Of a DNA stretch of 55,532 bases, positions 28,820 to 52,894 are shown piece by piece. The DNA is taken from positions 478,397-533,928 of the forward strand of contig NC_057746.1 of the NCBI RefSeq assembly GCF_004010195.1, in the 5' to 3' direction. Position 1 is the first letter of the stretch. Every line of letters begins with the position of its first letter. The notes under the pieces are model-generated. The model saw only the letters and a list, made by a program, of their open reading frames with translations, had not been told where the DNA came from and made no database searches. The stretch is from Chiloscyllium plagiosum (lineage: Eukaryota). The position numbers and the translations under genes were made by a program.

Positions 28820-30560
28820 TTAGAGTTGTAGATAGAGTTATAGAGATGTACAACAAGGAAACAGACCCTTCGGTCCAACCTGTCCATACCGACCAGATAT
28901 CCTAACCCAACCTAGTCCCACCTGGCAGCACCCGGCCCATATCCCTCCAAACCCTTCCTATTCATATACCCATCCAAATGCCTCTTAAATGCTGTAATTG
29001 TACCAGCCTCTACCACTTCCTCTGGCAGCTTATTCTACACACGGACCACCCTCTGTGTGAAAAAGTTGCCCCTTAGGTCTCTTTTGTATCTCTCCCTTCT
29101 CACCCTAAACCTATGCCCTCAAGCTCTGGACTCCTCCACCCCAAAGAAAAGACTTTGTCTATTTATCCTATCCATGCCTCTCATGATTTTATAAGCCTCT
29201 ATAAGGTCACCCCTCAGCCTCCAATGCGCCAGGGAAAATAACCCTAGCCTATTCAGTCTCCCCCGATAAATTAAATCCTCCAACCCTGGCAACATCCTTG
29301 TAAATCTTTTCTGAATCCTTTCAAGTTTCACAACATCTTTCCGATAGGAAGGAGACCAGAATTGCACGCAATATTCCAATAGTGGCCTGACCAATATCCT
29401 GTACAGCTGCAACATGTCCTTCCAACTCCTGTACTCAGTACTCTGACCAATAAAGGAAAGCATACCAAATGCCTTCTTCACTGCCCTATCTACCTGCGAC
29501 TCCACTTTCAAGGAACTATGACCTGCACTCCAAGGTCTCTTTGTTCAGCAACACTCCCTAGGACCTTACCATTAAGTGTATAAGTCCTGCTAAGATTTGC
29601 TTTCCCAAAATTTATCTAAATTAACTCACATTTATCTAAATTAAACTCCATCTGCCACTTCTCAGCCCATTGGCCCATCTGGTCCAGATCCTGTTGTAAT
29701 TTGAGGTAACCCTCTTCACTGTCCACTACATCTCCAATTTTGGTGTCATTTGCACCTTACTAACTGTATCTCTTACGCTCGCATCCAAATCATTTATATA
29801 AATGATGAAAAGTAGAGGGCCAAGCACCGATCCTTGTGGCACTCCACTGGTCACAGGCCTCCAGTCTGAAAAACAACCCTCCACCACCACCCTCTGTCTC
29901 CTACCTTTGAGCCAGTTCTGTATCCAAATGGTTAGTTCTCCCTGTATTCCATGAGATCTAACCTGGCTGACCAGTCTCCCATGGGGAACCTTGATGAATG
30001 CCTTACTGAAGTCCATATAGATCACATCTACTGCTCTGCCTCATCAATCCTCTTTGTTACTTCAAAAAAACTCAATCAATTTTATGAGACATGAAGCCAT
30101 GTTCACCATCCCTAATCAGTCTTTGCCCTTCCAAATACATGTACATCCTGTCCCTCAGGATTCCCTCCAACAACTTGCCCACCACCGACGTCAGGCTCAC
30201 CAGCCTATAGTTCCCTGGCTTGTCCTTACCAACCTTCTTAAACATGGCACCACGTTTGCCAACCTCCAGTCTTCCGGCACCTCACCTGTGACTATCGATG
30301 ATACAAATATCTCAGCAAGAGGCCCAGCAATCACTTCTCTAGCTTCCCACAGAGTTCTCGGGTACACCTGATCAGGTCCTGGGGATTTATCCACTTTTAT
30401 GCGTTTCAAGACATCCAGTACTTCCTCCTCTGTAATCTGGACATTTGTCAAGATGTCACCATCTATTTCCTTAAATTCTATATCTTCTATGTCCTTTTCC
30501 ACAGAAAATACTGATGCAAAATACTCGTTTAGTATCTCCCCCAACTCCTGTGGCTCCACA
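28820..30560 (-). mobile_element. Young 5-prime-truncated CR1
   Basis: KSPGPD...DWRLANV...DFSKAF...[10 protein letters not shown]...LERIQKRFTR and the 3-prime UTR. Confidence 0.95.
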
Positions 30561-32236
30561 CAAAGAAAACACACTGTACAGAATATGTTCGGAGCTGATT
30601 GAAGGGTTCTTGGTTTATCCTGGGGAATTAGATACACTGCACTCAGACTGCACCTCCCAGGACTATTAAATCCAAGCCCCGGCTTTTGGGAAAGGCCGAT
30701 GCCTTCAGGTGAAATCCTTAAAAAATATCTTCAAAGACATTTCAATAAGTGCCTCTCCGGGTACAGTGGTTGAATTGCTGTGGTGCTGGGTTATCATTCC
30801 AGAGATTCGGAATTCAAATCCAACCACGGAAAGTTATATTTATCGAATGACTGAGAAACAGGCCAAGTGGTCTGTGCTGGGATTTATGTTTCACCTCCTA
30901 TTAGCAGATCCTTCTAATCCTTTTCCCTCATAGGTTCCGCTGAGGCCCATTTAGTGAAGGTCGATCCTCCCCTTTGTCCCGTTCTCCTGATCCCATTGTT
31001 TGCATTTACAGTGTCCCTACCTGTTCACCGGAACCTCTCGGTTCAAGTCCTGGAATGTTCAGGGATGGAACCCAATAGAAAGTGATCAGAACATTCAGCC
31101 CATTTAACTCAAACCTTATCCAACCCCCACAGCAACAAGACCCTCCAGCAGATTGACTCTCCACATTATAGATTTCAGCAACATTTTATCCAGTCACACA
31201 CTTTGCCCTGAATATACGAACCACTAGTTTGCTGTATTCTGTTTATCATGTCTATTTCAGAAGCTGGTACATGTCAGAACCATTTGTGAATTTCAGACAC
31301 AGACATAGATAAAGAATACCCCGCCTGTCTCCCTAGTGAGAATCTCGCCTTACTGTTTGACAAACGTATAAGAGACACAGTGAGATGTTCTGGGTGTGAG
31401 GAGATTCATCACTGGACTCCTCATGTGTTTGTGGTACTAAATGCGACAGCTTACACCTGGGATACCCTTAGAATACCTGCTCCTGGTTCTGGTTTATTTA
31501 ATGTGGCATCAGTCACTGAAGCACAAAAAAACAGGGTTTGCAGATTTGGTTTTTAACAATAAAATCGAAGTTAACTGCGTAGAATGAATTAACAAAAATA
31601 TCTATCAGGTCAGATATCATTCTGGGGTCTGACTTGTCCAGTACTAACACAAGCTGGAATCATAACAATGGTTTGCCTCAGAGTCATTAGGCCTTTTCAA
31701 TCATTACTGTCAGGGAGGGTTATAAACCGTGTCCCCGAGGTAGCTCCGAAAGCCAAGGGCCAGATCAGAGGAGTGGGTGGAGTGTGTGTGACTGGTCCCC
31801 TCCACAGGCCTCACCCACAATTTATTTTCTTGTTGGTTCCTTTCATCATAGGAACCATTGTGGAAGTCCCAGCAGGTTTCAGATTTCCTACCCGGGTATG
31901 ACTTGATAATAATCAAGTCACTATATCCCCAAAAGGCTGAGACCAGGCAAGCACCAGGATTTGTTGGAGGCCAAGATAGAGCCTCCCAAAGTGAATAAGG
32001 TCAGGAGAGAGAGCCCAGAGGAAATAACAAGGGCACAAAGGGTCTCATCCAGTAAAAAGGGATTTCCACCTGGGTCCCAGGGACTGACAGGGTGTGCCGA
32101 GGTTTAATCCACTTCAGAAAAGTTCCACAAAGGTGCAGAAAGCAGCACAAGGTTCAGTGGCCCTGCAGGGGGCAGTATTATCCAAATAGTTTGGAGAAGC
32201 AGGTTAAACTCTGAGAAATTATAAAGACTGAAAAAT

Positions 32237-33632: not shown

Positions 33633-35089
33633 AAACCCTGTTTAATCAATCAATTTTAATGGTAAATCTGATTGCAGGATGATGTTTGGTACGTTATATC
33701 ATAATATAGCACTTGTCTATCACTAAATGGTGGTGTCTCACTTTCCTGTACAAACCATATGTTTCCTCTTTCCTCATCAGATACCTTTAACATGTCCAAA
33801 AAATGTCATGACAACAACAGTCCTTGTTTTAAAATCTTGGGTAAATATGTGAATTATGTTTACTGAGGGAATATATAAAAAAGTAAATTGTTGCTAATGA
33901 TGATATTGCTTGATAATGTGAAGGCTGAATTATCATCTGATGAGTTATATATTATAACAAATTTCAAACTTCAAATTCCAGAGTTGCTAAACATGCGGAT
34001 AACCAGAACATCTTTGGACTGTGGGAGGAAACCGGAGCACCCAGAGGAAACCCACGCAGACACGGGGAGAATGTGCAAACTCCACACAGACAGTTGCCCG
34101 AGGCAGGAACTGAACCCGTGCCACCTTGCCGCCCACTGTGCCACGGTGTTCTGTCTCGTATCTGTGTCAGGCAACATTACCAGATATTATACATTTCCAG
34201 TCACACACTGACGTGTAGGGATTGGGAGGGTCACTATTAGAGTAATGCTTGGTAACGAGTATGGAAAACGTTTCAGAGTAAAAGCATATCAGTCACTTAG
34301 TAATAAAATAATAACATATATGATACTGAGTAAGGCAGGGGGATCCATCCTCTTGTAAATTACTCTTAATACAGATTTGTACAGGCATTTAATTGCTGTT
34401 AAAGATGACACTAAGGTGGATCAAAAAATATAACTTACTGACAACCATTGATTGCTTTACAGTTAATACAATTTCAAAGTAAGTCACTTGATAAAGTACA
34501 AATGAGTAGTGGAATAGAAACCATTTTTGAAAGACTATAAAAAAATTGATTCAATTCAAATAAAGTTGGTGAGCAGAATTCAAAAATATATTAATTGTAG
34601 AATTAAACTTCCAAAAGGTTGCAATAAGAATACAGGATACGTTTTAGACAAGTTTGATTCAATAATTTTAAATTTTAGCAACAGAATAACATTGCCAGGA
34701 AACACATTTGTCTAATAATTGAACATAAGTAACATTGTTTGTAATTCCCTTTTTAAGTATTTGATGAAAACATCTGAATCCATACAATTGTAACTGATAA
34801 ACAAAATAACAATCTTACAATAGTGTTAAGTTGTGCTTTATGATATGAGAAACCTGTTGCAGTTTCTGCTGATTTCTGCTGGTAGTTGCTGATTTCTTTA
34901 TGTATTGACATCCAATGAGTGTAAACAGTCAATGTCTCCAACTTTAAAATATCAAAGAGTTAAAAACAGGAAATAATGTAAATACACAACAGGCCAGTCA
35001 GCATTTGAAAAGAGAACATGGAAAAGAATCTTTCAAATTCAGATCCACCCCAGGGAAACACAGTCAGGAATACTCATTAAAACTGTCTT

Positions 35090-35387
35090 TGTCCTTCACA
35101 CATGTCATTTCCCCAATTTTGATGTAGTATTTGCTCTGCTGCACAATTTTCAGTCTAGATCTTTTTGTGACAATCTTTCCTCTCATTGTTTAAAACCCTA
35201 AAACAATATGTTTTCCAATTCATCACTGGTGAATAGCTTCTCTTGAAATGCTATTATTAACGTGATCAGACCTTTCTTTCCCTTGCCATTCACATCAATT
35301 TCAATTCCTATTTCTCCTGTAATTATTTTCAGTTCCTCCAAACTCTGGGGTACACAGACTAGTATTGGGTTGTAATGGGGAACTTTC
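35090..35387 (-). pseudogene. Decayed continuation of copy A: helical CARD/death-fold-like domain remnant
   Basis: After the stop and a frameshift it reads SLEELKIITGEIGIEIDVNGKGKKGLITLIIAFQEKLFTSDELENILF / RVLNNERK ... YIKIGEM. It aligns by eye with copies B and C. The CARD assignment is by pattern only. Confidence 0.45.
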
Positions 35388-35719
35388 TCAATGTGCATTG
35401 TGTTGTTCCAATAAACTCTGCATTGCCTCTTGTTCCTCACTGGTGGTTAAGAATTCTGTTACATTGCTACCTGGATGATATTTCACTGTGTTTCCATCAG
35501 AAATGTTGCTTGCAGGGTTTAATTTGTCTGTTTCTGAGGGACTCTCTTCTTCATTTGTGGCTTTATTCCCTCCCTCCAGGCCACGTGGATAGTTTGACTC
35601 TCTCTGTAAGGGCTGTGTTTTGAGCTGGGGCTCAGATTTGCTCATCAGCTTCAGTTCCACATTCTTATCCATGACTTCCTGCTGACAGGGGGTGGGCCTG
35701 GTCTCCAGAAAGGGTTGAG
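35388..35719 (-). CDS. Large phase-1 exon (copy A): 110-aa polar/acidic segment, candidate long cytoplasmic tail
   Basis: Acceptor attaattccag|, then an open frame AQPFLETRPTPCQQEVMDKNVELK...EEQEAMQSLLEQHNAH-stop with no TE similarity recognised. Its start is homologous to copy C at 5320. Confidence 0.5.
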
Positions 35720-36393
35720 CTGGAATTAATGATAATATTAAACAGATCAATCGCATGAAAACTGAGAGAAATATAAATGTGCCTATTAACAGGTCAGTAA
35801 CAGTAAATATTGAATCATTACATTTTAATGCCTTTTTCCAGAATTTAAATAGAATAGCTGTTGTAGATTTCCTGTTTAATCTGTTTCTACTGACAAGGAT
35901 ATGGAGCGTTGATTATAAACCCTTCTGCATGACCCCCCCAGAGAGCAGGCACTGGGATAGGATGGAGAGTGGATAAAATGAAATAAAGCAGCAAGAGAGG
36001 GAAACTCAGTCTGTGGGTCGAGTGTATTGGAAGAAAACTCAAAAACGAAATCACAGGAAGACAGGATTCTCTAGTGAGGATTTTGCTGATTTGTTTCTCA
36101 AACCCATGTCATTTGTTAGTTAGCATAATGTTTTATTAGTATTGGTAACATTTCCTAGTGGTAATGAAGTCACAGGAAGCAGTAGATTTTATTAATCTCA
36201 AATAAATGCAGAGAAAATAATAGGTTAATTAATACATAATAAAGATAGCAAGACAGAAGATGTGACTGCAGAATTGCTCCTGAGTTATCAGCATGATTGG
36301 CACGAATATATCTCAGTAATTGTCTGTGCCTTGAGGAACTCTATTAACACTGTGATACATCAGGGAGGGAGATGGACACCTCATTTCAGGAGA

Positions 36394-37580
36394 CAAAAGT
36401 GGGTACTGCAGATGCTGGATATTAGAGTCAAGATCAGAATGGTGCTGGAAAAGCACAGCAGGTCAGGCAGCATCCGAGGAGCAGGAAAATCAACGTTTTG
36501 GGCAAAAGCCCTTCATCAGGAATAAGGCTGGAAGCCTCTGCGGTGTAGAGATAAATGGGAGGGGGTGGGCAATGGGGAAGGTACCTGAGAGTATAGTAGA
36601 TGGATGGAGGTGGGGGTAAAGGTGATAGGTCAGAGGGGAGGGTGCAGCAGATAGGTGGGAAGGAAGATTGACAGGTGGGACAGGTCATAAGGATGATGCT
36701 GAGCTGGAAGGTTGGAACTGGGGTATAGTGGGAGGAGGGGAAATGAGGAAACGTGTGAAGTCTACATTGATGCCCTGGGGTTGAAGTGTTCCGAGGCAGA
36801 AGATGAGGCGTGCTTCCTCCAGGCGTCGGGTGGTGAGGGAGCGGCGGTGGAGGAGGCCCAGGACTTGCATGTCCTCGACAGAGTGGGAGGGGGAGTCAAA
36901 ATGTTGGGCCACGGGGTGGTGTGTTTGATTGGTGTGGGTGTCCCAGAGATGTTCCCTAAAGCGCCCTGCGAGAAGGCGTCTGGTCTCCCCAATGTAGAGG
37001 AGACCGCTTCGGGAACAACAGATACAATAAATGACATTGGTGGAAGTGCAGATGAAACTTTGATGGATGTGGAAGGCACCTTTGGGGCCTTGGATGGAGG
37101 TGAGGGGGAAGGTGTGGGCCCAGGTTTTGCAATCTCTGCGATGGCAGGGGAAGGTGGGTTGTTGGGGGACATGGACCTGACCAGATAGTCACAGAGGGAA
37201 CAGTCTTTGCGGAAAGCAGGCAGGGGTGGGGAAGGAAATGTATTTCAGGTGTTGGGGCCTGTTTGTAAGTGGCAGAAATGACAAAGTGGCGGAAGATGAT
37301 GCAATAAATACGGAGGTAGGTGGGGGTGGAAGGTGAGGACCAGAGGGGTTTTGTCCTTGTTGCGGTTGGAAGGGTGGGGTTTGAGGGTGGAGGTGCGGGA
37401 TGTGGATGAGATGTGTTGGAGGGCATCTTCAACCACATGAGAGGGGAAATTGCTGTCTTTAAAGAAGGAGGTCATCTGGTGTGTTCTGGGGTGGAACTGG
37501 CCCTCTTGGGGTGGAGGCAGAGGAATTGGGAATACGGGATGGCATTATTACAGGAGGTAGTGTGAGGCGGTGTAATCTAA
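36394..37580 (-). mobile_element. Penelope-like element 3-prime portion (RT end, GIY-YIG, terminal repeat with hammerhead motif)
   Basis: KDKTPLVLTFHP, LLYIGET, AQHFDSPSHS...LQPQGINVDF; CTGATGAAGGGCTTTTGCCC motif at ~36490-36520. Confidence 0.85.
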
Positions 37581-38519
37581 GTAGCTCCTGCAAATGGGGA
37601 CGTGGGGAGAGGGAATGAGGGGGTGGGGGAGGGGAATGAGGAGGGGAGGGGTATGTGCCAAATTATACCAATTTCAGCAATTCTAGAACCTACCAAATGC
37701 CTAAATCCTCGCAGCAAGAAATCAATCAGAAACCAGATTAAAACCACTTCTGGTGAGGGCCCTTCCTGCACATGTTGAGATCTGCTTAAGAGATGGAAAG
37801 CCTAAAGCATTGATCTCCAAAATGACAGTGTGACATTAAATCAGAGTTACATGCTAACGGACATCACAATCTGCCTACTCTGCATATTTCTAGGGAGTGT
37901 ATGTTGTGTTCTCGCTTATGCTTTTACTAAATGGGGAAATGAGGGGAAGGGGAATGAGGACATTGGGGGACAGGGAATGAAGTTATAGTGGGGAATAGAA
38001 TGAAAACATTATGGTGGGGGAATGTGGGCATGGGGCTGGTTTATGAGAAAGTGATTGGGGGTATTTATGTGGAAGTGGTGGGGCAGCTTGGGGGAAGGAA
38101 TGCAAAGTGTAAGCAGGCCCCAGGAAGCCTCCAGCCCTCCTCCTTCCGTTACTGTTCCTTCTGTCCTTCCCTTCCCCTTTTGCCTCCCTCACTCCTTCCC
38201 CTGTCTCCCAGATTACATCCTCATCATTTCCTGGGAATCATGCTGCATTCCACCCTCTACCGAGCATGCTCCCAGCTTCCTGGTCCTGTTCCCATTGTCT
38301 CTCAGGTCCCGTTACTATGACCACCAGATTCTGCATCCCACTTCCAGCTTCCCAGGTCCCATTCCCCCTCATGTAGGTCCCATCACCACCACCCCATTGT
38401 CCTGGATCCTGGTTCCCCCTCTCCCCTCTCCTGGGCCTTGTAACCCCATCCCCATCCTCCATTCATTTCCAAATGTACTGATAATGAGACATAGTAACGT
38501 GATTGATTAGACATTTACG

Positions 38520-39260
38520 CAAGATAAGATTGAACATAGTAATAGGTTTAACATTGCTCAAATGGTGAGCAGATGGGAAATGTTGAACTTCAAAGGGATT
38601 TGTTATCCTTGTTCATGACTAACTGAAAGTTAACATGCAGATACAGCAAGCAATTAAAGCAAATGTCACGTTGTTCCTCAGTACAAGGGGATTTGAGTAC
38701 AGGAGTAAAGATGCTTTGCTGTAATTCCACTCAGCTTTGATAAGATGTCACCCAGACTATCAAGTGCAGTTTAGTTCTCAGTACCAACGAAAAAAATATA
38801 CAGTATTTGGTGTAGATGGAATTCAACAAAACATTACAGACCAATTCCTGGGATGGAAGGATTTCTCTCAGAAATAATATTAAATAAACTGGACCTTTAT
38901 TCTCTTGAGTTTGGAACAATGTGAGATGATCTCATTCTTCCAGGGTTCGACAGGGTCAATGGAGGTTGGCTGGCAGTCAGAGTTAGGGGCCTTGGGACTC
39001 GTTCTCAGAATAAGAGGTAACTCACTGAGGTCTGAGGTGGGAAGGAATTCTTTTACTCAGAACCTGGTGATTCCTTGGTACGGACTGTCTCAGGAGGTTG
39101 GGGATGCTCAATTGTTCAGTATGTTGAGACTGTAATCAATAATGTTTGGATTATTAACAAACATCAAGGGATATGGGGAGAGTGCAGGAAAATGGTGTGG
39201 ACGATCAGCCAATGAATGATGGAGTGGGCCTCCTGTTGGTCCTATTTGGTATGTTCTTAT
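38520..39260 (+). mobile_element. Old CR1 3-prime fragment
   Basis: Degenerate FEYRSK...RNSFTQ segment and 3-prime UTR. Confidence 0.7.
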
Positions 39261-41559
39261 TCATTGTCTACATCACGCTCTAGATGACCAATGCTCACTT
39301 CCCTTACTCTTTTCCTTTTCTAAATACACTTACAGGTTCTTTCTTTCTAATTAGCATACTCTACTTTCCTTCCTTATTAATCTGTTAGTTATTCTTTTCA
39401 GTACTTTATAACCTATCCAATCTTCTGACCCGCCACTTGTTAAAGTACAGATTTGAATCCCTTATAGACTCTACCTGTAGAGTCTCTCTTTGTTCGTCCT
39501 GGAGATTGTTCTCATTGATAGTCTGGAATAAAAACCCCTTGCAGACAGATTGGTTTAATTTTAGTCATCCCCTTTATTCACTAATAGCATCACTGTTACA
39601 ACATAACACTGATACCTATAAACTAAACTAACTCGGTTCTAATAACTTTGGAGATGAGAGTACCAGCTCTTCAAGTGCCCCAGCAGGCTACTCCGATGTA
39701 CTGATACAAAGTGGCTTCCGTTATACAAAAGTTTACAAAAACACTGCATGTTCTTAATTAGACAGATAACAATAATTAATAAGGAAGAAAAGTTAACTGA
39801 CAGGTCTGTATACACTTGACTAATCACTCCTGCAGGCCCTAAGCTATTCATCAGGTGGGAAAAACATAGGTTAGGTGCTTGCGAGTGAGATAAACTCCTA
39901 TCATAAAGAGGTTCCAGTCTGAGCTAATTGGAGAGTTCATAAGGTAACCTTGCACAGCTCACATGTCTGATACAATTATTTTAGAAAATGGCTTCTTAGC
40001 AACGAGGGCAAACTTTTGACCATAAAATGGCTTCCTGACACATTGTGCCAGAATCCCTTCAATGTTGGACTTAGAATAACTTTTTTTAAAGCTAGGAGCA
40101 GATTCCTGTTTTTAAGCACTGAATCATTCTGTACCTGAGGCTGAGATGTTGCCGTAAGGTTGCATTTAAACTGATTCATTTAAACTTATTTGAATTAAAC
40201 ATGCTTTCTTTCAGGGTTGTGATTCAAATTCAAATAAGACATAAGATCTGATTAATTAGAATTGGTAGTGGGGCAGTTTGTAAGGTCTGTAGAGTGGTCT
40301 GCAAGAACAGCAAGTAAGTTAAAGCTTCATCAATATTACCTTTTACAGAGTTTGTATTTAATAACCAGTAATGGCTACTCCATATTATTATAAAGTCTCA
40401 AAAATTCAATTAAGTTCAAACCATAGCAGGTAAGCACAAAGAGTTAATTTTCTACGGGCTTTGACAGCCCCAGCACGAAAATGGTCTCCGTCTCTCTCTC
40501 TCTCTAGTGTCCTTTTGAACTCTCAAGTCAGGGACTTGTAACAGAAAAATGTTTTTCCCTCTGTGTCTACCCCGCTTGCAAGGGTAAGAAGAATCCATTA
40601 TAATTGATAGGACCTGACTGTTAATTACAAGGCTCTTGATGGTACTGGGTTTTGTTTCCAGGTCAGAATCAAACACTGTCATTAGTTTCACAAGGGAACA
40701 GTGAATGTTACCACTCAGTGTCCTGTTCACACAGATTCACTGATGCTAAGGCAAATGTTCTTAATTGCCTTAGAGCATTCTGTTATCACTTGGTGAGCAC
40801 AGATGTTTTTATCTTCTGCATAACTTGGGACCCCCACCCCTGACTTTTTTTCTGAGCCTCCCTGCCTGTCTATCTTCTAGTGTATAGCAAATGTGTTCTA
40901 TAATTCGACATTACATTATAGACTAAATGTTTAAAGACATGTTTTAAGGCTATAGACTTTCTCACACTCACATTTGTGGAATTGTACACGTTTTCTTTCC
41001 ATTTCAGGCTACACTTAATTTCCTTTCGTTGACCACCTTCCAATGAGAAAGAAGCTTAGTACTCTGAAATATCTCCATAACTGGGTGATTTTGCATCTTC
41101 ATTGACCTATCCCTGAACCTAATTTCTCTGACATCATGCCCTCATTTAAGTTTAAAACCGTAGCCTTCGATCCTCGCTGCACCTCCTCAAATGGAATGGG
41201 ATGTTTGATTATATTGGGATAACTGCTCCCCTGAAGCAACTTTATTCCATGATTATTAATTAACCCTGTCTCATTGCACATTACCAGATGTAACCAACCT
41301 GCTCTCTGGTTTTCCTTATAATATGCTGCTCCATGAAATTATGATTCTATGAAACTGTCCCAAAAACATTTTATGAACTCATCATTCACAGAATTTACCA
41401 ATCTTTCTTACTTATATATTTATAGAATAAAATCACCTATGTTCACTGCTGTACCTTTCTCACAAGTCCCCAATATTTCTTCCTGCGTCGCCCATCCTAC
41501 GATTTGATGGGTCTTGGGGAAAATCACGAACTGCTACGGTCTCCATGGCAACACCTCCA

Positions 41560-41790
41560 TCAGAGTCTAGATCAGAGTGGTGCTGGAAAAGCACAGCAGG
41601 TCAGGCAGCATCGGAGGAGCTCAGGAAAATTGACATTTCGGGAAAAAGCCCTTCATCAGCCCTTCCGGATGAAGGGATTTTACCCGAAACATCGATTTTC
41701 CTGCTCCTCGGATGCTGCCTGACCTGCTGTGCTTTTCCAGCACCACTCTGATTAGACTCTAATCTCCAGCATCTGCAGTACCAACCTCCG
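41560..41790. mobile_element. Palindromic head-to-head dimer of the Penelope terminal repeat
   Basis: 41560-41660 is the reverse complement of 41665-41760, centred between two hammerhead-like cores. Confidence 0.85.
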
Positions 41791-43139
41791 CCTGGTTGAT
41801 TTTAACACCTCAATCAGAGCCCACTTGCCAACCAATCAGTACTCTTCTCTCATATATGTTGTTTTCCCTTTACATTAATATTCATGTGAATTGGTCTGAT
41901 GAGTGCAAATGAAAAACTTCTCAAAAATATGTCTTTTTCTTTAGCAACACTGAAGTTTTGGAGCGACTGAATGACTACTTTTAAACCTAAGACAGAGGTT
42001 ACAACAAAGACCAAACATTAGGATATCAAAAACACAGTGCAACTTCCAGGTAAGTTTTGAACTTTTCTCCATGCTTGTATTAAACTGAAGTAGGTGCCAG
42101 TTTTCATTTCCAAATGTATTGATGATGTGAAGGTCAGACCCAGTCCCCCTGGCTGATGGATGTCTATGAGAGATCAGATATAAGAAACACGCTGTATTTT
42201 TGATCCCTCACCAATGTGGATAACCTCACATTTCTCCATATTCCATTCCATGTGTGAATGTTCTTGTCCACTCACTTAGCCTTTGCAAGTCATCTTGTAC
42301 CCTTCTTACAACCTCCTCTAACATCTAATTTAGTGCCATCTGCCAAGTTGGAAACATTAAATTTAATCCCACATCCCAATAATAAATTTAGATTGTGAAT
42401 AGCCAGATCCCTGGCACAGCTTCCTGTGGTTTCTCACTGATCACAACCTGCTAACCTGAATATGACCCATTTATCCCTACTGTACGGTTTCTGACTGTTA
42501 ATCCTTCAGTATGTTCACCCAAATCACATCAATAAAGCTAAATACTGAAAAGGTGGATGAATTGAGCAGATACTTTGTTTTTGAGGATAAATAAAACTAC
42601 CAAAATAATTAAGAATCAGATGAGAAAAGGAGACAATGAGAATCCCTCAGGAACGGATATTGGAAAAGCTGTCAGAACACACACTGACAAGCTCCCAGAT
42701 CATAGACTTATACAGATGTACAGCATGAAAAAAGACCCTTCAGTCCAACTCATCCAAGCTGACTAGTTATCCTAAATGTATCTAATCCAATTTTCCAGCA
42801 TTTGGCCCATTTCCCTGTAAACCCTTCCTATTTGGGTCCCTTTTAAATGTTGTAATTGTACCAGCCTCCACCACTTCCCCTGGCAGCTCATTCCATACAC
42901 ACGCCACCCTCTGTGTGAAATGAATTGGCTGTGCTAAATTGCCCCTCGTGTTCAGGGGAGTGTTGGTTAGGTGCATTAGTCAGGGGTAAGGGGAATGGTC
43001 TGGGTGGGTTACTCTTTGGAGGGTCGGTTGGGCTAAAGGGCCTGTTTCCACACTGTAGGGATTCTATGAAGTCATCGCTGAGACAAAGGATGCATTTGTT
43101 TTAAATTTCCTAAAGTCCATATAACGGTTTCATCAGGTT

Positions 43140-44630
43140 GAAAAATAATCAACTTGACTCCTCTCTTCAAGAAGTGAGGGAGAGAGACGGTGGGAAAGTA
43201 CAGGTCAGTTAGCTCACTACTGTCACAGGGAAAATGCTGGAATGTTTATTAAAGAGGCTGTAGACAGATACCTCAAAAATCTCAGTGCAATCAGGTTGGG
43301 TCAATGTGCTTTTGTGAAAATGCAATCATATTTGACTAATTTATTTCTTTGAGAAAGTAGCAAGAAACTGGTCAAAGGGAACATTGTGGAAATTGTGACC
43401 TCAGGTTGCCAGAAGGCATTTCACAAGAGACCACATCACAGGTTACCATATGCCAATGGTAACATGTGAAGTTGCATAGACAGAGGATTGATGACCTAAA
43501 ATGAAAGATAGATTATGTAAAAATCTGTCATTTTCAGGTTGGCAAGGTGTGACGAATGAAGTGACATAGTGATCAGTGCAGGGGCCTTAGTTATTTACAA
43601 CGTAGATCAATGATTTGGTTTAAGGAACTAAATATATGGTTACCAGATTTATTGATAATTCAAAGAAAAGCAGGAAAGTTAGTAGTAAACAGACACCGGA
43701 GTCTGCAGAGGGATATAAATGGACAAGCATATGACAGCTGGTTTAGAATATGGACAATATGACATTGACCAAAGGGAAAACAAAGAAAACTTACAACCCA
43801 GGAACAGGCCCTTCGGCCCTCTAAGCCTGAGCCGATCCAAATTCACTCTCTAAACCTGTCACCCAATTCCTAAGCGTCTGTATCCCTCTGCTCCCCACCT
43901 ACTCATGCATCTGTCCAGACACAATGTAAATTAATCTACTGTGCCTGCCTCTGCTACCTCTGCTGACAACGTGTTCCACACACCTTGTCCACTTTGGCAG
44001 CAAGAATAGGGAGCAATATTTCATTTAAACGGAGAGAGACTGTGGAACTCTGAAGGGTTAAGAGTTCTGATACATGATTCACAGAAAGTTAGGATGCAGG
44101 TACAGCAAGTGATTCGGGAGGCTAATTAAATGTTGCAGTTTAATGTAAGAGTTGATGCATAAAAGGATGTTGTGTTAAAGGCATTGGTACTACAGCATCT
44201 GCAGGACCACCCACAGGTCTGATCCCCTCATGTAAGATAAAGATATAGATGTATCAGAAGCCGTTCTGAGAAGGGGTTGCTAGGTTACCTTCCGAGGAAT
44301 GTTGGACAGGTTGGGCCTCTATTCATTATAGATTAGAAGTAGGAGAGATGTTCTTACTGGAACACACGAGATCCTGAGGAGATTTGATAATGTGGATGCT
44401 GAAAAAATGTTTCCTCTTGTGGGAGAGACTAGAATCATTGGATATTTAGTTTAAAAATGAGGGATCTTCCATTCCAATGAACTGGAGAAAATTTCTTTCC
44501 TGTCAGAGGATTGTGAGTCTTCAGAACCTGCTTCTCCAGACAGCAGTGAATGCTGGGACATTAACATGTTTTAAAGGTAGTGTTGATCTATTCTTGACCA
44601 ACCGGGAGTCAAAGGTTATTGGTAGGTTTG
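43140..44630 (+). mobile_element. Old CR1 RT with an inserted antisense CR1 tail (43772-43985)
   Basis: Degenerate YRSVSS...GKMLE...QKAFHK...SVQGP motifs. Confidence 0.7.
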
Positions 44631-44809
44631 GAATTGAGGATTATCCCTGTGGGCCTAGTGACTACTGCTGATCGAGTCTTTTGTTCATTAAATGCAGGTA
44701 GGAATAATGCACTATTCGGATTTACTAATGGCTTTCGATAATTTATCACATGGAAGTCTCTTGAGTAAGGCCAGAACACATAAAATGAAAAGATAAGTTA
44801 CTGCATATA

Positions 44810-45115
44810 GTTCTGGCTGCCACACTAACAAAATGACGTGGAGGTTTTGGAGAGGGTACAGAAACGGTTTACCTGGAGATTGCCTGGTTTGGAGGGTATG
44901 AGCAATAAGGAGAGATTCGACAAACCTGGTTTGTTTTCACTTGAATGGAGACTGAGGGGTGTCCTGATGTATGTTAACAAAATTATGAGAGGCATGGAGA
45001 GAATGAGTTCTCAGAGTCTTTATCCCAGGGTAGAAGTGCCAAACATTAGGGGACATAGGTCTAAAGTGAAGGGGGGAAAGTTCAAAGGAGATGTGAGAAG
45101 CAAGTTTTTTTTGAA
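44810..45115 (+). mobile_element. CR1 ORF2 3-prime fragment
   Basis: LERVQKRFT...RGHRSKVKGGKFKGDVR. Confidence 0.85.
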
Positions 45116-45189
45116 ATCCTAGTTCCCACATTCCTTTCCATCCTCACCTTTTATGGAGATTCTGGCGATCTCTCCCATTCCATTGATAT

Positions 45190-45260
45190 TCAGTCAGTGA
45201 GGAGGTGAGAGTGTGTGAAGGGTTTAATGATCAATATTAGCCCTGGACTGGGCCGATCAC
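45190..45260 (-). CDS. Candidate short cytoplasmic/terminal exon of the class I gene
   Basis: Strong acceptor (cccctgtctgactttccttcag|) about 300 nt after the TM donor; the phase-1 reading gives GDRPSPGLILIIKPFTHSHLLTD-stop. No transcript evidence. Confidence 0.4.
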
Positions 45261-45425
45261 CTGAAGGAAAGTCAGACAGGGGACAGGACGTGTGTATACG
45301 TGTGTATGTGTGTGTGGGGGTTATTCAGTTCCATTCCCCACAGTGCCCTGTACTCCCAGTACAGGAGATTCCCCCACACTCACCCTGTCCCCTCAGTTCC
45401 ACATTCCCCTCTCTCTGATTCTTAC

Positions 45426-45479
45426 CTCTCCAGGGCTTTTTCCAGATGATCATTCCAAATATTGCAGCCATTGCAACGA
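45426..45479 (-). pseudogene. Relic half TM exon in a 141-bp tandem duplication
   Basis: Encodes VVAMAAIFGMIIWKKPWR with its own gtaaga donor, exactly 141 bp from the main TM donor. The adjacent intron sequence is duplicated too (units start at 45344 and 45485). Confidence 0.75.
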
Positions 45480-45566
45480 CTAATTGCCCTGTACTCCCAG
45501 TACAGGAGATTCCCCCACACTGACTCTATCCTCTAAGTTCTACGTTCCCCTCTCTCTGAGTCTTAC

Positions 45567-45674
45567 CTCTGTATGACCGTCTCCAGATGATTATCCCGAA
45601 TAAAGCAGCCAGTCCAGTGACTGATCCAATAATAATAAGTATTACTGAAAGGTGGGGCCACTCTCCGTTTTTTT
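45567..45674 (-). CDS. MHC class I connecting peptide/transmembrane exon
   Basis: Phase1-phase1 exon (ttctag|, or an in-frame alternative acceptor at 45683; donor AGAG|gtaaga) encoding EKNGEWPHLSVILIIIGSVTGLAALFGIIIWRRSYR: a hydrophobic helix followed by a basic stop-transfer segment, downstream of alpha2 on the same strand. Confidence 0.8.
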
Positions 45675-46035
45675 CTAGAATTGCTGAAACACATTTGAAT
45701 AACACCAGTATTATTTTTGTTCCTGGACCCATTCCCAATTTTCTGTTGATTGGGGACAATTTTAACTGATCCCACTCATTGGGAATTGTTTAGATTGATT
45801 GAAATGCTGGTTTGACCCTTATCAGATTTCCCTCTGCAGTGAAGTCCCTGAAGATCCCATTGATGGGGATATAAACATCACATTGTCCCAAACCTCGGGG
45901 TTACCCTCCTGTTCCCCTTCTCCCTGGTGTCTGTGCTCTGTCCTTGTTCAATCCCCAGAGCTACAATGGACAGCCCAGGAGGCAGCATCACTGATGGTTT
46001 TCATATCAAACTTCAAAGGGATGAGGAATAAACAG

Positions 46036-46352
46036 AGTGGCACGGTGGCTCAGTGGTTAGCACTGCTGCCTCACAGCATCAGAGTCCCAGGTTCGATTCT
46101 CAGCCTTGGGTGACTGTCTATGTGGAGTTTGCACATTCTCCCCGTACCTGCGTGGGTTTCCTCCGGGTGCTCTGGTTTCCTCCCACTGTCCAAAGATGTG
46201 CAGGTCGGGTGAATCGGTCATGACTAAATTGCCCAAAGTGTTAGGTGCATTAGTCAGAGGGAAATGGGACTGGGTGGGTTACCCTGCGGAGGGTCAGTGT
46301 GGACTTGTTGGGCCGAAGGGCTTATTTCCACACTGTAGGGAATCTATTCTAA
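46036..46352 (+). mobile_element. HE1-type SINE in a class I intron
   Basis: Full copy flanked by taaac(a/t)ga. Confidence 0.9.
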
Positions 46353-47257
46353 ACTGACTGCGGGAAACTGGGCTGAGCTGATAATGAAGAAAAAGACAGA
46401 GAAACAGAGCTGACATTTAAAAAAAAAAAGCACTTGGTCCAATCTAACTCCAGGATTTGGTCCTAATTTACTGCAGTGAACCCACCACGGTGAAGAGATG
46501 AACTAAGTGAGACTACCCAGCTCAAAGAAAAGGCTCCCACAAATGTCCAGAGATAGTGGGACAGACACTTGGATATGGATCAACTGATCAAACAGAGTAT
46601 GGGTGGATTTGTCAACTTGAAAACTCAAGTGTAAAGCTGACAGTGGAATTTCTTTGGAATTGAGCATCTTTAAAAAGAATAAACACAATGAAACTTTGTT
46701 TTTCTGTTTGTGTTAATGTCTTTCTCAGTGTCCTGTGTTGTTTCTTTTGTGTAATTAACCCGTGCTCTGTGTTTGAAGAGCCTCTGTAGGTTCCTGTGAA
46801 TATGTTTCAGTGTCCGTCAGCACCATAAATAATAAACATGTCAAGAAAATGATCCATCAAGTCAGGCTTTCTAAATATCCTTAAAGCTGGGACTGGGAGG
46901 TTTTGGTTTCTCAAGGAATCAGGGCATCTGGGAAGCAGAGAGTCAAGAGGATTTGAGGACAATGACTAGCCACGGTCACGTTGAATAACAGAGTAGAATT
47001 AGTCGTGTACTTTAAAGTTTTAGGATTTTCAATTAAATTGTGGTGAAAATCATCCATAACCTCGTTGAATGGNNNNNNNNNNNNNNNNNNNNNNNNNNNN
47101 NNNNNNNNNNNNNNNNNNNNNNNNNNNNNNNNNNNNNNNNNNNNNNNNNNNNNNNNNNNNNNNNNNNNNNNNNNNNNNNNNNNNNNNNNNNNNNNNNNNN
47201 NNNNNNNNNNNNNNNNNNNNNNNNNNNNNNNNNNNNNNNNNNNNNNNNNNNNNNNNN

Positions 47258-47531
47258 ACACGCGCACACACGTGCACATGCGCACACACGCGCACACACG
47301 TGCACATGCGCACACACGCGCACACACGTGCACACACGTGCACATGTGCGCACACACGCGCACACGCGCACACGCACACACGTGCACACACACATGCGCA
47401 CACACACACACATGCGCTCAACTATCACCACAGAAACACACGTGCATACGCGGGCCCGCGCGCGCGCACACACACACACGCCCACGCACACACACACACA
47501 CGCACGCACGCCCACACACACACACACACGC
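47258..47531. repeat. Compound (CA/CG) microsatellite
   Basis: Largely alternating purine-pyrimidine tract abutting an N-gap. Confidence 0.95.
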
Positions 47532-48405
47532 AGTAATTCTCGATTGTTATCCAAGAGGGTTCACATTTTCAACGAAAATAGATGTATTCCAGAACTTCAT
47601 CACAGAGTCCTTTACTGGATTGCTTCTGTTCAGTTTGGATTCTAAATTAGATTCCTGATTCGNNNNNNNNNNNNNNNNNNNNNNNNNNNNNNNNNNNNNN
47701 NNNNNNNNNNNNNNNNNNNNNNNNNNNNNNNNNNNNNNNNNNNNNNNNNNNNNNNNNNNNNNNNNNNNNNNNNNNNNNNNNNNNNNNNNNNNNNNNNNNN
47801 NNNNNNNNNNNNNNNNNNNNNNNNNNNNNNNNNNNNNNNNNNNNNNNNNNNNNNNNNNNNNNNNNNNNNNNNNNNNNNNNNNNNNNNNNNNNNNNNNNNN
47901 NNNNNNNNNNNNNNNNNNNNNNNNNNNNNNNNNNNNNNNNNNNNNNNNNNNNNNNNNNNNNNNNNNNNNNNNNNNNNNNNNNNNNNNNNNNNNNNNNNNN
48001 NNNNNNNNNNNNNNNNNNNNNNNNNNNNNNNNNNNNNNNNNNNNNNNNNNNNNNNNNNNNNNNNNNNNNNNNNNNNNNNNNNNNNNNNNNNNNNNNNNNN
48101 NNNNNNNNNNNNNNNNNNNNNNNNNNNNNNNNNNNNNNNNNNNNNNNNNNNNNNNNNNNNNNNNNNNNNNNNNNNNNNNNNNNNNNNNNNNNNNNNNNNN
48201 NNNNNNNNNNNNNNNNNNNNNNNNNNNNNNNNNNNNNNNNNNNNNNNNNNNNNNNNNNNNNNNNNNNNNNNNNNNNNNNNNNNNNNNNNNNNNNNNNNNN
48301 NNNNNNNNNNNNNNNNNNNNNNNNNNNNNNNNNNNNNNNNNNNNNNNNNNNNNNNNNNNNNNNNNNNNNNNNNNNNNNNNNNNNGAACAGAACTGAAATA
48401 CATAC

Positions 48406-48681
48406 CTTTCCTTTCAAAGTATTGTTTTCCAAAGTGTAAGCGTGATTTTAAACGCTCAACAAGTTCCTCTTCCAAGTGCCGTTTCCAATGCTCGTTCCAC
48501 ACTTCATCCGAATCCCAGTTCTCCTTGATCTTCACTGCAAAGTGATTTGCTGCGACCCATCTCATTCTGTCCGGCTCTAAACTGATAAAGTCCTTTCCAT
48601 CAAATCCAACATTCATCGATCTCTTAATAGAGCCATCAGCAGTGATCTCAACAGTCCTTATGAATTGCAAAATATGCACTC
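48406..48681 (-). CDS. Nonclassical MHC class I heavy chain, alpha2 exon
   Basis: 276-nt phase1-phase1 exon (ctttggcag| ... AAAG|gtatgt), the typical alpha2 exon size, encoding GVHILQFIRTVEITADGSIKRSMNVGFDGKDFISLEPDRMRWVAANHFAVKIKENWDSDEVWNEHWKRHLEEELVERLKSRLHFGKQYFERK. Motifs: H-x-x-Q, FDGKDFI, WVAA, K-x-x-W. Confidence 0.95.
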
Positions 48682-48979
48682 CTGCCAAAGATAAAATGAG
48701 AAACAAATTAATTGTTCACTGAAAAGTCCCTTTAAAACCAGACATCATCCTGCTCGCTGAGTGTTACCCTGATGGATTACTTGGAGGGTTCTGTTACAGT
48801 AATAAGATTTCTCAGTGGAATCAGTTTCACATGAATCGATTCCTTGTCATGTAAACTCATAATAAGACACAGGAGCAAGTCATTTGACATTGAGTCTGCT
48901 CTGTTCTTCATTGCCGACTTGATTGTGGCCTTAACTCCACTTTGTTTTTTGCCCCTGACAACCCATCACTCATTTGTAG

Positions 48980-49661
48980 TGTTCTGACACGGGGTAAACT
49001 CTCCTGCTTAATTTAAAACCAGGAAAATATGTAAACATTCGAGTGGCCAAGAACTATGTAAAGTAAAAATTAACAACTTTATTTCTTAAAGTATAACAGA
49101 GAATAATTAACCAACCACTACTTACAATTTCTTTCTCTAACGTATCTTTTACTGCTCCTTTTATAATACTCATCCGATAAAATTCCCAATTAAGATTTAC
49201 TAAACAACACTTCTTATCTCAAAACCAGGCAGCTGCAAGTTCTTGCCTTCAGATCTTCCGGTGTCCTCTTTTCTCCTTGTTAGGAATTTCTGCGTCACAG
49301 GTTACTGATCAAAAAGGTACTTTTAAGAGAGATATTTTTTCAAACAGTCTGTTACATGCTATGTCTTGGCAGTTCCCCTCTCAACTGTTCAATTTTCCCC
49401 AGTCTTATACCCCCAAAGCATCGGATTGCCATTGGCTTCTAAGATTGTCAATGTACTCAATTCAAATGGGATTGGAGTTTGAATTTTTGGGGGGTATAAT
49501 TTAAACTGGTTGGCCTAAGATGACTCTTTTTTTTGTCGTTTCCAGGCAACTCAGCAAGTGCTGTTTGTTCTTAATCAAATATTACTTTGTAAAGTCTCCA
49601 GCACTTGGTATACTTGCCAAGTCCTTCACTCTCTTAAAGGTACACCCACATCTTCAGAACA
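48980..49661. mobile_element. Solo LTR in the class I alpha1-alpha2 intron
   Basis: GTAG|TGTTCTGA...TCAGAACA|GTAG: 8-bp terminal inverted repeat and a perfect 4-bp TSD; it splits a CR1 tail. Confidence 0.9.
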
Positions 49662-50769
49662 GTAGATCAAAAATCTGTCTAAATCAGCCCAGCCTAGATT
49701 TAATTAACTAGTGCGCTGGCAATTACAACCAATGTACCCACCATCTCTGCAACTATTTAAGAATCTAGGGATGCAACCTTTGGGCTCATTAGTTTATCTT
49801 ATATCTTTTCCCTGTAGTGACAATGTTTAGTTTAAGATCCTTTTTCTCTCATGATTTTCTTCTATTTTAAGATTTGGTGTCTTCTGTTTTGAAGTTTACG
49901 ACATTTGTCCAAAGTCATTGCCATTCCCTTGTTTCCCATTATGAAACTCCCCAGTTTGTTTCCAACTCTCTTCACACAGAATCCGGAGGTAGGCCTGGGT
50001 ATTGCTCAGGCACATGTCAGTGCACTAAGTGCTGTGCTCTGCAACGATGGTACCAATGGGCAGAGTGAGAAGTGGGAAGGGACCAAGAATAGATTCAAGG
50101 CAGACACCAGAAGTCACACTAAGGGAACAGGAAGAAATGTCATTAATGCTGATTCTCAGACTGCTTTAGATAGAATGGAATGGATCCAGGCAAGTGAAAT
50201 TCCAACCAGCCAATGGTCTCAAGGCTTGAGGGGAATGCTATGGGCAACTGTATCAATCACTGCTCATCACCACTTCAAATCCTTCAGGCTGGCACTTTGA
50301 CCTTTCAAGTGGTTTGTTTAACCCACAGCTTCTCAGGTCTTCACAAAACAAATGACCTTGCACAGGTGCAGACAAAATTGGATATTTTTAAATGTACCTG
50401 AAAAAAAACCCCACCTTCTGGCCTGGGAATGGCCCTCGTTTCCCAGGCAAGGAATATTTGTAAGCCTTTGTGGTCAAGTTGGCATGAGCTGATTCGTTCC
50501 CTGGCATTTTGTCTGTCCACTGACAGCTCCATTTTGAACAGAATTTTTATGCAAGTTGTAGGTTACTTCACTAACACCTTACAGTAAAGTAACGAGAAAA
50601 GAGTTACTGGAGGAATGAGGAAGAATTTCTCAAGGGAATGACTGCCTGAGAAAGCAGGAAAACAGGGAAACTTATCACCGTCAGGTGATACAATAAATAT
50701 CTGTGGACATTGAGAAGAAAACATTATTGTAATCTGGTAATGATAGCTGACAAGAAAGAAAAGGGAGAT

Positions 50770-50945
50770 CTTTCATGTAGGTGCAGTTACAACATTCAAA
50801 AAATATTTGGATAGGTACATGAATAGGAAAGGTTCATAAAGATATGGGTCAAGGACAGGCAGAAGGGACTTAATTAGTTTGAGAAATCTGGTCAGCATGG
50901 ACAGGTTGGACCGAAGGGTCTGTTTCTGTGCTGTATGACATTATG
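50770..50945 (+). mobile_element. CR1 3-prime end
   Basis: Conserved CR1 3-prime UTR. Confidence 0.8.
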
Positions 50946-51662
50946 GCTGCAAACGGGTTGAGAAAAGGCGAAAAGGGAAAGTGTTTTTTTCAACGCAGTC
51001 AAAGAAAGTGAAGGGATAAGAGCTGTTCCAGGGATGGAAAGCTGATCAGTGGGATGCAGATATGAAGTTCCTGTGAAGATGAACATGCTTTCGGGAGATG
51101 ACCACATATTTAAAGCTCCTGGAGGGGAAAGGGAGGTTGGAGATTAAGCAGCAACAGGACAGGAGTCTAGCTTTTCCTCTTTTACAGGAGAGTGATGATA
51201 ATGGTAGATCTGAAGGAAACAGGGACAGAGGCCAAGGGGTGGGAAATGACAGCAATGACAGCCAAGGCAAAGGCAACGAGACAAAGTAGTAAAACAAGCC
51301 CATTATTCACACGGGCAGTTGGAATGAGGAGTCCATTTACGGGATAGAACAACACCAGTAGGTGGTTTGTGACAACAAACACAGGACCCTGATTGCCAGA
51401 TGGGTATCATTGTTTTACATATTCCTGATTGCAGCTTCTCTGCTGTGCAGAAGCTGATTCCATACGATAGCGTGCATTCAGTGAAGAATTTGCTGCCAAT
51501 TGGTGACTAGGTAGCCGCTCCACAGCTGTCTAATACAGTTGTGGTCAGAGTGTCCCAAATCGTGTATGTCTCAGTCTCAACCTATTGCAGTCTAACTGTG
51601 GTTGTATCCCGATCTGCTTTAAACAGGGCAGTTAGTGGGAGAATCTGTATCAGTAATCTTAC

Positions 51663-51923
51663 CAGACGTTTGGTTTGCACTTTTCATTACCGTCCTCAGG
51701 TTCTCCCTTGCCTTGGCAGAATGTTCGTCCCCTTGCTTTGTGAGAATTTTCCAGTAATTAGCATCATACGCGTCTGTCATCCACCGCTGCAAGGAGACTG
51801 TCTGACGGGTGTCACTGTCATAATAGGTCACAGGAACTCCATTGATCATTGTTGCACCAAAGTATTCAGGCAGGTCAGTTGTGCCAGAGACAGCCATAAA
51901 AGCTGCAGTATAGATTTTGCTGT
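51663..51923 (-). CDS. Nonclassical MHC class I heavy chain, alpha1 exon
   Basis: 261-nt phase1-phase1 exon (ttcaaaactgcag| ... TCTG|gtaaga) encoding DSKIYTAAFMAVSGTTDLPEYFGATMINGVPVTYYDSDTRQTVSLQRWMTDAYDANYWKILTKQGDEHSAKARENLRTVMKSANQTS. It has the class I motifs LPEY, YYDS, WM, YW and the N86 glycosylation sequon NQT. Confidence 0.93.
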
Positions 51924-52894
51924 CTGCAGTTTTGAACAAAAGTGAAAGGGTCAGGTTTGTGTACTCGATCAAGCAAAGCCCATTCCCCAAAGCCCTGTAA
52001 TCAATGACAGGAGTCACTCAAACTGTCAAATCCACCATCTCAAAAAGCAGCTACAACCAGTGGATTTTCTGATAATAACACCCAGATAGGAACACACTCT
52101 ATTCTCTTTTTTTTTACATATAGAAAGACCTCTGCATTTTTGGCAGAAGATTCTTAGGCTCCTTCAGAAATGTACAGCCATACTTCTGTCATGACAAGTT
52201 AGCATGGTGGCTCAGTGGTTAGCACACAGCATACCAGGGTTCAATCACATCCTTAGATGACTGTCTGGGTGGAGTTTGCACATTCTCCCTGTGTCTGTGT
52301 GGGTTTCCTCCCACAGTGCAAAGATGCGCAGGTTCGGTGGACTGGCCGTGCTAAATTGCCCCGTCCACGGCCCAGGCATAGCAGCAACGTCTGGAACCAG
52401 AGACCAATGCCATGATTGGTGTGCCAACACTCATCACGGAAGATCAGAGCGGCTGCGTATGGCACAGTTATGCAGCTTAGAGTGAACACCGAGTGAATGT
52501 CCAAAAGAGTGAGCACATGGACCTCTGCACTGGCCAGGAATGGAATCAGGAAATTCAGTACTTGTGGATGCACATGAAGTATTCCAAAAAAAACTATCAA
52601 CTTTAATAACAGAAGAAGCCTGTAAATCCACATAACGATCCATCCTGTCCTCAGATGAAAGTAGAGGACCTACTCATGTGCCAAGGAAGAGGACAGCCTT
52701 GTGGTTGATTACTTTTCTAAATTTCCCATTGTTCGATAACTGAACAACACAACAAGCTCAAACATTTGTTGACATGATGTATGATAGTTCCAATTTTGGA
52801 GTACGTGGCCAATTCTCAAAATGGCCATAGGGGTATGTGCAAATAGGCACATGATGTCAGTTACTGGTTACTAGATCTGCCCAAGCCAGACTGA

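Follow-up and report, generated by a model that had tools for sequence, protein, structure and literature searches.

The window analysed here, a stretch of 55,532 nucleotides of Chiloscyllium plagiosum (NC_057746.1, positions 478,397 to 533,928), contains four readable exons of an MHC class I-like gene, all on the minus strand: an alpha1 exon (51663..51923), an alpha2 exon (48406..48681), a connecting-piece/transmembrane (TM) exon (45567..45683) and a tail exon (35388..35719). The alpha1 exon (261 nt) and the alpha2 exon (276 nt) are in phase 1 on both sides, with splice sites read from the letters. The alpha2 frame scored above the Pfam MHC_I cut-off of 28.3 bits (54.3 bits, E 1.6e-14), and the frame enclosing alpha1 scored just below it (26.9 bits, E 4.1e-06). 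The exons were compared by tblastn with a family set of 116 proteins, the members of which carry P numbers throughout. The alpha1 exon is 82% identical to P0004/P0005 and the alpha2 exon 94.6% to P0005 and 90.3% to P0004; by these Pfam matches and by 82-95% identity to class I models, both groove domains of an MHC class I heavy chain are present, and the alpha2 exon encodes no cysteine. As in a class I heavy chain, the ectodomain is followed by a single transmembrane segment, encoded by the TM exon (117 nt, phase 1 on both sides), which is 79-84% identical to the TM segments of P0004/P0005. The TM exon ends in phase 1 at 45567 with the donor GT at 45566-45565, and the tail exon opens at the phase-1 acceptor AG at 35721-35720, both as described in an earlier note on this DNA, which had put the distance at about 9.8 kb; the intron measures 9,847 nt. 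The final G of the TM exon and the CT that opens the tail exon form the first tail codon, Ala, from which the frame runs over 110 codons to the stop TGA at 35390-35388. P0004, P0005, P0008 and P0009 are the best relatives of all four readable exons.

A phmmer search of 1,835,955,588 representatives with the tail frame returned only two matches, P0001 (E 1.3e-32) and P0002 (E 2.3e-10), both of them class I models of sharks from RefSeq that have the tail exon at the C-terminus (XP_072406454.1 from Chiloscyllium and XP_067865876.1 from Heterodontus). The tail stands behind a class I ectodomain in 14 of the 116 family proteins, from nine shark species (E < 1e-5), and four further members have only its first 9-10 residues. 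In the full-length isoforms P0003, P0004 and P0005, the order SP-a1-a2-a3-TM leads directly into the same opening tail residues. Tail identity amounts to 73-89% in orectolobiform sharks and 43-46% in Heterodontus. The window tail and Heterodontus P0003 share the last alignment column, and the S. canicula tail ends four residues earlier, past the same Q-S-L-L-R/E-H stretch. Since the stop is thus shared with Heterodontus and, within four residues, with S. canicula, it is native and does not mark decay, contrary to the earlier reading of a tail left truncated. Both the frame and the C-terminus of the tail are conserved over what we take, from the ordinal placement of the species, to be four shark orders. 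Several paralogs, including the closest models, have tails that end early, at 75, 88 and 97 residues, which could mean weak constraint; the window copy keeps the full 110. The joining of the TM exon to the distant tail exon is supported by this homology and gives a candidate splice for the window copy. The proposal that a class I gene is joined to a long cytoplasmic exon therefore appears sound at the level of sequence, the only relatives of that exon in the 1.84 billion representatives being C-terminal tails of shark class I models.

We consider it probable that the locus holds a long-tail shark class I paralog with a native tail stop and 3' untranslated sequence beyond it. The gene would be a single member of a non-classical MHC class I family that is multicopy in sharks and lacks the alpha2 disulfide. 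Its sublineage would be one that splices the TM exon to a remote exon, in this copy over a 9.8-kb repeat-bearing intron. The remote exon would give an acidic cytoplasmic tail of about 110 amino acids, predicted as coil plus one short C-terminal helix. We infer that the window copy is transcribed and spliced in this long-tail form.

It is unlikely, although worth weighing, that the family link is real but that this particular copy is dead or spliced otherwise, having lost alpha3 or ending at 45260, with the tail exon a mere passenger of tandem duplication. Alpha3 is the membrane-proximal C1-set Ig domain of a class I heavy chain; with that of P0005 as query nothing credible was found in the readable letters of the window, the best match (E 0.042) being a spurious one next to the tail exon, nor was a leader exon found in them, so the window copy may be broken. 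Against this, an assembly gap of 722 N (47663..48384) starts 22 nt past the alpha2 donor and is an obvious hiding place for alpha3. A second N run (47073..47257) is adjoined by frames that are runs of Cys/Ala/Arg/Val or His/Thr/Arg/Ala. Both gaps fall in the interval from alpha2 to the TM exon, and none lies between the TM exon and 35719; an unseen alpha3 exon may sit in such a gap, for example the one directly past alpha2. A different 3' end is suggested by two features just downstream of the TM exon. The first is the remnant of another TM exon, one of the short-tail type, of which the 3' half is left (45427..45483, minus strand); it has its own gtaag donor, shows a visible local repeat and matches the end of the P0018 TM with 89% identity across 19 residues (tblastn, E 1.8e-08). 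The second is the exon at 45260 already listed in the earlier note and present in the letters (45190..45260, minus strand; acceptor AG 45262-45261), a phase-compatible candidate short-tail exon with 23 residues in phase 1 and a TGA at 45192-45190. When the short tails of P0018, P0022, P0024, P0028, P0048 and P0032 were run by tblastn, none matched this candidate for a competing 3' end. Other sharks have a small cytoplasmic exon in the middle, between the TM and tail exons. In the window it is decayed: its relic with an internal stop (35828..35887, minus strand) precedes the tail exon by 108 nt and has 60-68% identity to P0010, P0013 and P0017 across 19-20 residues (tblastn, E 4e-04 to 2e-03); the closest models, P0004 and P0005, likewise skip this exon. 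No protein identical to the window copy was found in the databases, the best reaching 82-95% per exon. The alpha1, alpha2 and TM frames are nevertheless open with intact splice sites, as read from the letters, and the tail frame is open all the way to its native stop, whereas paralog tails stop early.

Every protein that supports the long tail is a RefSeq prediction (XP_ accessions), and in the window a long distance separates the tail and TM exons, as would be expected if gene predictors had wrongly attached to class I an exon of a separate downstream gene or repeat. We regard such misattachment as highly improbable. Class I tails are the only relatives of the exon in 1.84e9 representatives, it is single-copy in the window (tblastn), phase 1 is retained at the TM/tail junction in every model, and in the tail alignment the frame is kept whether or not a species has the middle exon. 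The frames downstream in the window belong to a LINE reverse transcriptase: an RVT_1 frame (Pfam E 1.9e-13) is followed by the frame 29122-29511 (minus strand), to which a fragment of a LINE 3' end within the TM-tail intron (44838..45119, plus strand) is 58% identical (E 1e-20). These downstream frames gave no GTPase match. The LINE fragment, together with the 21% of the 9,847-nt intron that has another copy within the window, bears out only in part the earlier description of the intron as mostly transposable element. The word "mostly" goes further than the Pfam search, in which none of the ten larger frames tested, eight of them inside the intron, had a match. Misattachment is further opposed by the clustering of the tail-bearing genes on a tree built from the ectodomain only, which left out 27 of the 116 family proteins. 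A group of 18 rows contained all 12 long-tail rows, three rows with the start of the tail only and the window alpha2, as well as two Heptranchias rows without this tail, and stood apart from 60 rows without a tail; SH-aLRT at the base of this tail-bearing group was only 81. Within it, the window alpha2 was sister to P0005, inside groups of three rows (SH-aLRT 98) and five rows (99).

The sequence behind the tail stop had been read as the continuation of the tail into an amphipathic helical segment and, further, as the remnant of a CARD/death-fold domain, so that an ancestor would have joined a class I ectodomain to a death-fold signalling module. The letters are there: a frame of 63 residues (35201..35389, minus strand), one frame off the tail, runs to a stop and is followed by shorter frames. 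The stretch is ordinary, because the six frames of the window hold 97 stop-free stretches of at least 84 codons and the post-stop stretch has about 84. The three local copies from which a consensus had been merged were not recovered; when the tail, the post-stop segment and the piece after it were run by tblastn against the whole window, each matched only itself (others E >= 0.25), and without other local copies that consensus is not reproducible. None of the 116 family proteins continues into sequence similar to the post-stop pieces (best E 0.59). Pfam gave only noise on the segment (KHA, E 0.13) and no death-fold match, and among PDB sequences compared by phmmer none scored below E 0.9, the best being a GTPase at E 0.94. 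The single-sequence AlphaFold (AF2) model (pLDDT 52.2) shows two strands forming a beta hairpin and one helix instead of a helical bundle; Foldseek against the PDB returned no match at E <= 0.001 and no death fold among the matches listed, a result that counts little given the poor model. The Atlas recognition value of the segment, 2602, exceeds the mark of 2300, although its best rows are below 0.9 and belong to small helix-hairpin families, not to death folds.

A CARD or death fold is a bundle of six helices and about 90 residues, for which 63 residues in one frame are too short, and the likeness comes down to a loose hydrophobic spacing in one short frame. Unlike a death fold fused to the receptor, the segment lies out of frame with the tail and behind a conserved stop: the TGA at 35390-35388, common to other shark orders, and the frame shift separate it from the receptor's own reading frame. 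Profile, PDB sequence and fold searches thus placed the segment in no death-fold superfamily, the outcome that the earlier note had itself named as grounds for giving up the idea. The claim of a class I ectodomain with a death-fold signalling domain fails on testing, and a decayed domain of this kind is hardly credible; the sequence past the stop is judged to be 3' untranslated and its "amphipathic helix" a chance open frame.

The tail of the long-tail paralog has a net charge of -8, and 72% of its residues are polar or disorder-promoting. An AF2 model from 11 sequences (pLDDT 58.6) is coil with a helix at residues 94-108, and the conserved Q-S-L-L motif lies on this short predicted C-terminal helix. 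The acidic-dileucine sorting signal [DE]xxxL[LI] of cytoplasmic tails has its acidic residue at -4 from the leucine pair. In the window, in Heterodontus and in S. canicula the nearest Glu stands at -5 from the conserved leucine pair near the C-terminus, so this pair departs from the canonical form of the signal. The clusters of acidic residues with Ser/Thr and the leucine pair near the end resemble endosomal routing signals, and we infer from this analogy that the tail may be a flexible sorting or docking region rather than a folded signalling domain.

The closest known counterparts are the shark RefSeq models named "class I histocompatibility antigen, F10 alpha chain-like" with long tails (for example XP_072406454.1 and XP_067865876.1, and also rows from Hemiscyllium ocellatum and Rhincodon typus), which have the same exon order, the same TM-to-tail junction, a homologous tail and, as in the window copy, an alpha2 without cysteine. 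The window copy is identical to none of them (82-95% per exon) and has the full 110-residue tail, compared with 75, 88 or 97 residues in the closest models. Published accounts of the elasmobranch MHC describe multicopy shark MHC-Ib lineages, UBA and UEA (PMC10751288, PMC12562908); compared by these descriptions, they resemble the window gene in being multicopy, non-classical class I. For teleosts, published work describes part of an expanded class I family with a cytoplasmic tail lengthened by an extra exon, for which a role in routing, not folded-domain signalling, is proposed (PMC4364491, PMC3760826). The teleost genes are unrelated in sequence to the shark ones, and the shark tail, in which no canonical motif is demonstrated, greatly exceeds theirs in length (110 residues, rising to about 135 when the middle exon is included).

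Within the enlarged non-classical class I family of sharks, one branch has a tail of several times the length usual for class I, which gives comparative immunologists a concrete starting point for studying the cellular destination and binding partners of these molecules. More tentatively, galeomorph sharks may keep an old class I sublineage, perhaps undescribed in print, with a conserved tail that routes the molecule or signals inward. If so, the galeomorph tail of 110 or about 135 residues, with its acidic Ser/Thr clusters and leucine-pair helix, would direct these molecules to a particular compartment or pass a signal inward. For annotation, the locus is a warning that some 10 kb of sequence with repeats and exon relics may separate a tail exon from its TM exon.

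The class I-like gene lies on the minus strand, and direct reading of its letters bore out the coordinates, the phases and the 9.8-kb distance between the transmembrane (TM) exon and the tail exon that the earlier note had given. The alpha1 exon (51923-51663) and the alpha2 exon (48681-48406) are bounded by AG/GT sites, are in phase 1 at both ends and match Pfam MHC_I with E 4.1e-06, just below the curated cut-off, and E 1.6e-14, respectively. The TM exon (45683-45567, 117 nt) ends in ...ACAGAG followed by gtaag. The tail exon starts at 35719, behind an AG (35721-35720) that is preceded by a pyrimidine-rich run; it opens with CTCAACCC... and continues for 110 codons in phase 1 to a TGA at 35390-35388. 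Two N runs (47073-47257 and 47663-48384) between the alpha2 and TM exons, outside the TM-to-tail interval, span the expected position of alpha3, and the alpha3 domain of a close relative used as query gave no credible match in the readable letters of the window. A putative alpha3 remnant seen by eye at about 45800-46000 was dropped, as tblastn with an actual alpha3 domain lent it no support. Between the N runs, the readable stretch (47258-47662) has the look of a simple repeat, with frames composed of runs of Cys/Ala/Arg/Val or His/Thr/Arg/Ala, which may be the reason for the assembly break there.

The 110-residue tail frame alone was searched against 1.84 billion representative proteins and returned exactly two matches, P0001 (E 1.3e-32, 89% identity) and P0002 (E 2.3e-10, 46%), which are the RefSeq class I models XP_072406454.1 from Chiloscyllium and XP_067865876.1 from Heterodontus; in both proteins the matched region is the C-terminal end. 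The tails of these two models used as queries retrieved their full-length isoforms and one Hemiscyllium model, all of which have the order signal peptide, alpha1, alpha2, alpha3 and TM, followed directly by the opening residues of the window exon. The TM-to-tail junction predicted by the earlier note is present in predicted full-length shark class I models. When the window's exons were searched singly and unjoined, the best matches of each of the four readable exons were P0004 and P0005, two full-length shark class I models with the tail, and the family proteins P0008 and P0009. A search with P0005 yielded a family set of 116 proteins, the supporting RefSeq entries being predictions. The window tail was matched at E < 1e-5 by 14 of them from nine species (Hemiscyllium, two Chiloscyllium, Rhincodon, Heterodontus, two Scyliorhinus, Mustelus and Carcharodon), and four more, from Cetorhinus and Stegostoma, match the first 9-10 tail residues only. 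The original observation of a possible class I receptor with a long tail ending in a CARD or death fold is partly confirmed: the homology supports, at the family level, the link between the class I gene and the long cytoplasmic exon, and the domain is not supported. Genes of this kind already occur among public gene models, and the window adds a new copy. Literature searches outside the primary shark MHC-Ib descriptions and supplements found no report of shark class I molecules with a long tail and none of a class I-CARD fusion; the excerpts of two papers that name UBA and UEA as multicopy shark class I lineages do not mention tails (PMC10751288, PMC12562908).

A middle exon of about 25 residues lies between the TM and tail exons in Scyliorhinus, Mustelus, Carcharodon, C. 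plagiosum and Stegostoma. In the window a relic of it with an internal stop is found at 35887-35828 (minus strand). The tail exon starts 108 nt downstream of this relic, and the finding fits an exon pair that is old and part of the class I gene. The loss of the middle exon appears to be common to the group of this copy, since the closest models of the group also have no middle exon.

A tree was calculated from ectodomains only, using 89 of the 116 proteins and the window alpha2; the other 27 proteins were excluded for a length above 500 aa or because the motif marking the end of alpha3 was missing from its expected position. One group of 18 rows, with an SH-aLRT of only 81 at its base, comprises all 12 long-tail rows, three rows with the tail start only and the window, apart from 60 tail-less rows. 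It also holds two Heptranchias rows that have no long tail (P0012 and P0033), the tail of which opens like the short type. Provided that these models are correct, the long tail originated after the hexanchiform split or was lost in hexanchiforms. The window alpha2 contains no cysteines, as do 63 of the 89 family rows in the alignment (15/17 in the tail group and 48/72 among the others), and the absence is a trait of the family at large, peculiar neither to this gene nor to the long-tail group. Several additional Ig-type Pfam domains occur in two class I models, P0006 (694 aa, Hemiscyllium) and P0007 (611 aa, Mustelus), which are probably merged neighbouring genes.

The stop after the tail had been read as a sign of decay, a view that the alignment of C-termini contradicts. 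The window tail and the Heterodontus protein end in one and the same alignment column, and the S. canicula protein ends four residues sooner, after the same conserved Q-S-L-L stretch. The stop at 35390-35388 is therefore the native end and not a lesion. In some paralogs the tail is shorter, with ends at 75, 88 or 97 residues.

The segment after the stop (35389-35201, minus strand) is a 63-residue frame, one frame off from the tail and followed by short pieces in other frames, and it was here that a CARD or death-fold domain had been proposed. Neither Pfam, where the only hit was KHA (E 0.13), nor the PDB sequences, none of which fell below E 0.9, gave a match, and all rows of the Atlas search were below 0.9 and belonged to small helix-hairpin families. 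The single-sequence AlphaFold model has a pLDDT of 52.2 and a pTM of 0.23 and consists of two strands and one helix; Foldseek against the PDB returned 0 matches at E <= 0.001, a result that is close to uninformative for a model of such low confidence. The domain claim found no backing in these searches. The consensus of three local copies on which it had drawn was dropped, as no second copy turned up when the window was searched by blastn with 34900-35800 and by tblastn with three peptides. Ten post-stop pieces of at least 12 residues, compared with the 116 family proteins, reached a best E of 0.59, and the window's six frames contain 97 stop-free stretches of at least 84 codons. Because there are no copies and no family, Pfam or PDB matches, the model is poor and the frame length is ordinary, we conclude that the segment after the stop is not translated. 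About 1 kb downstream, at 34393, there is an ATTAAA. A reading of this segment as the beginning of a GVIN/VLIG GTPase remnant was also considered and weakly rejected for the window, with no Pfam match in the segment and downstream frames that are LINE reverse transcriptase.

The tail itself has a net charge of -8 and 72% polar or disorder-promoting residues; it has no Pfam match, 0 PDB sequence matches and only Atlas rows below 0.9. AlphaFold with an 11-sequence alignment predicted coil (pLDDT 51-67) except for a helix at residues 94-108 (pLDDT about 72-75), which coincides with the conserved C-terminal block. From charge and composition, the lack of domain matches and the predicted coil with its C-terminal helix we infer that the tail is flexible and carries short linear motifs. 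In the tail alignment the leucine pair is off the spacing of the canonical acidic-dileucine motif. By analogy with the class I genes of cod and stickleback, for which an extra tail exon is described (PMC4364491), the tail would most likely serve in routing.

Within the locus, a second TM exon, of the short-tail class I type, has left a relic of its 3' half at 45427-45483 (minus strand), with 89% identity to the family protein P0018 over 19 residues and its own gtaag donor. It is part of a local duplicated unit of about 120 nt between the used TM exon and a downstream exon at 45260-45190, a candidate short-tail 3' end that would encode a 23-residue tail if read in phase 1 and for which tblastn found no homology to the usual short tails. 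The TM duplication resembles what an exon swap or an unequal crossover between two sublineages of class I genes would leave behind. The long intron is repeated elsewhere in the window over 21% of its length, and none of 10 larger frames (eight in the intron, two elsewhere in the gene region) matched Pfam. A LINE with a reverse-transcriptase frame (29122-30637, minus strand; Pfam RVT_1 E 1.9e-13) lies downstream of the tail exon, and fragments matching the 3' end of this element are found at 44838-45119 (plus strand), within the intron, and at about 42785-42976 (minus strand). Copies of a short repeat at about 46030-46180 and 52245-52430 share a ...TGRMCKLH... stretch in their frames and resemble a tRNA-derived shark SINE.
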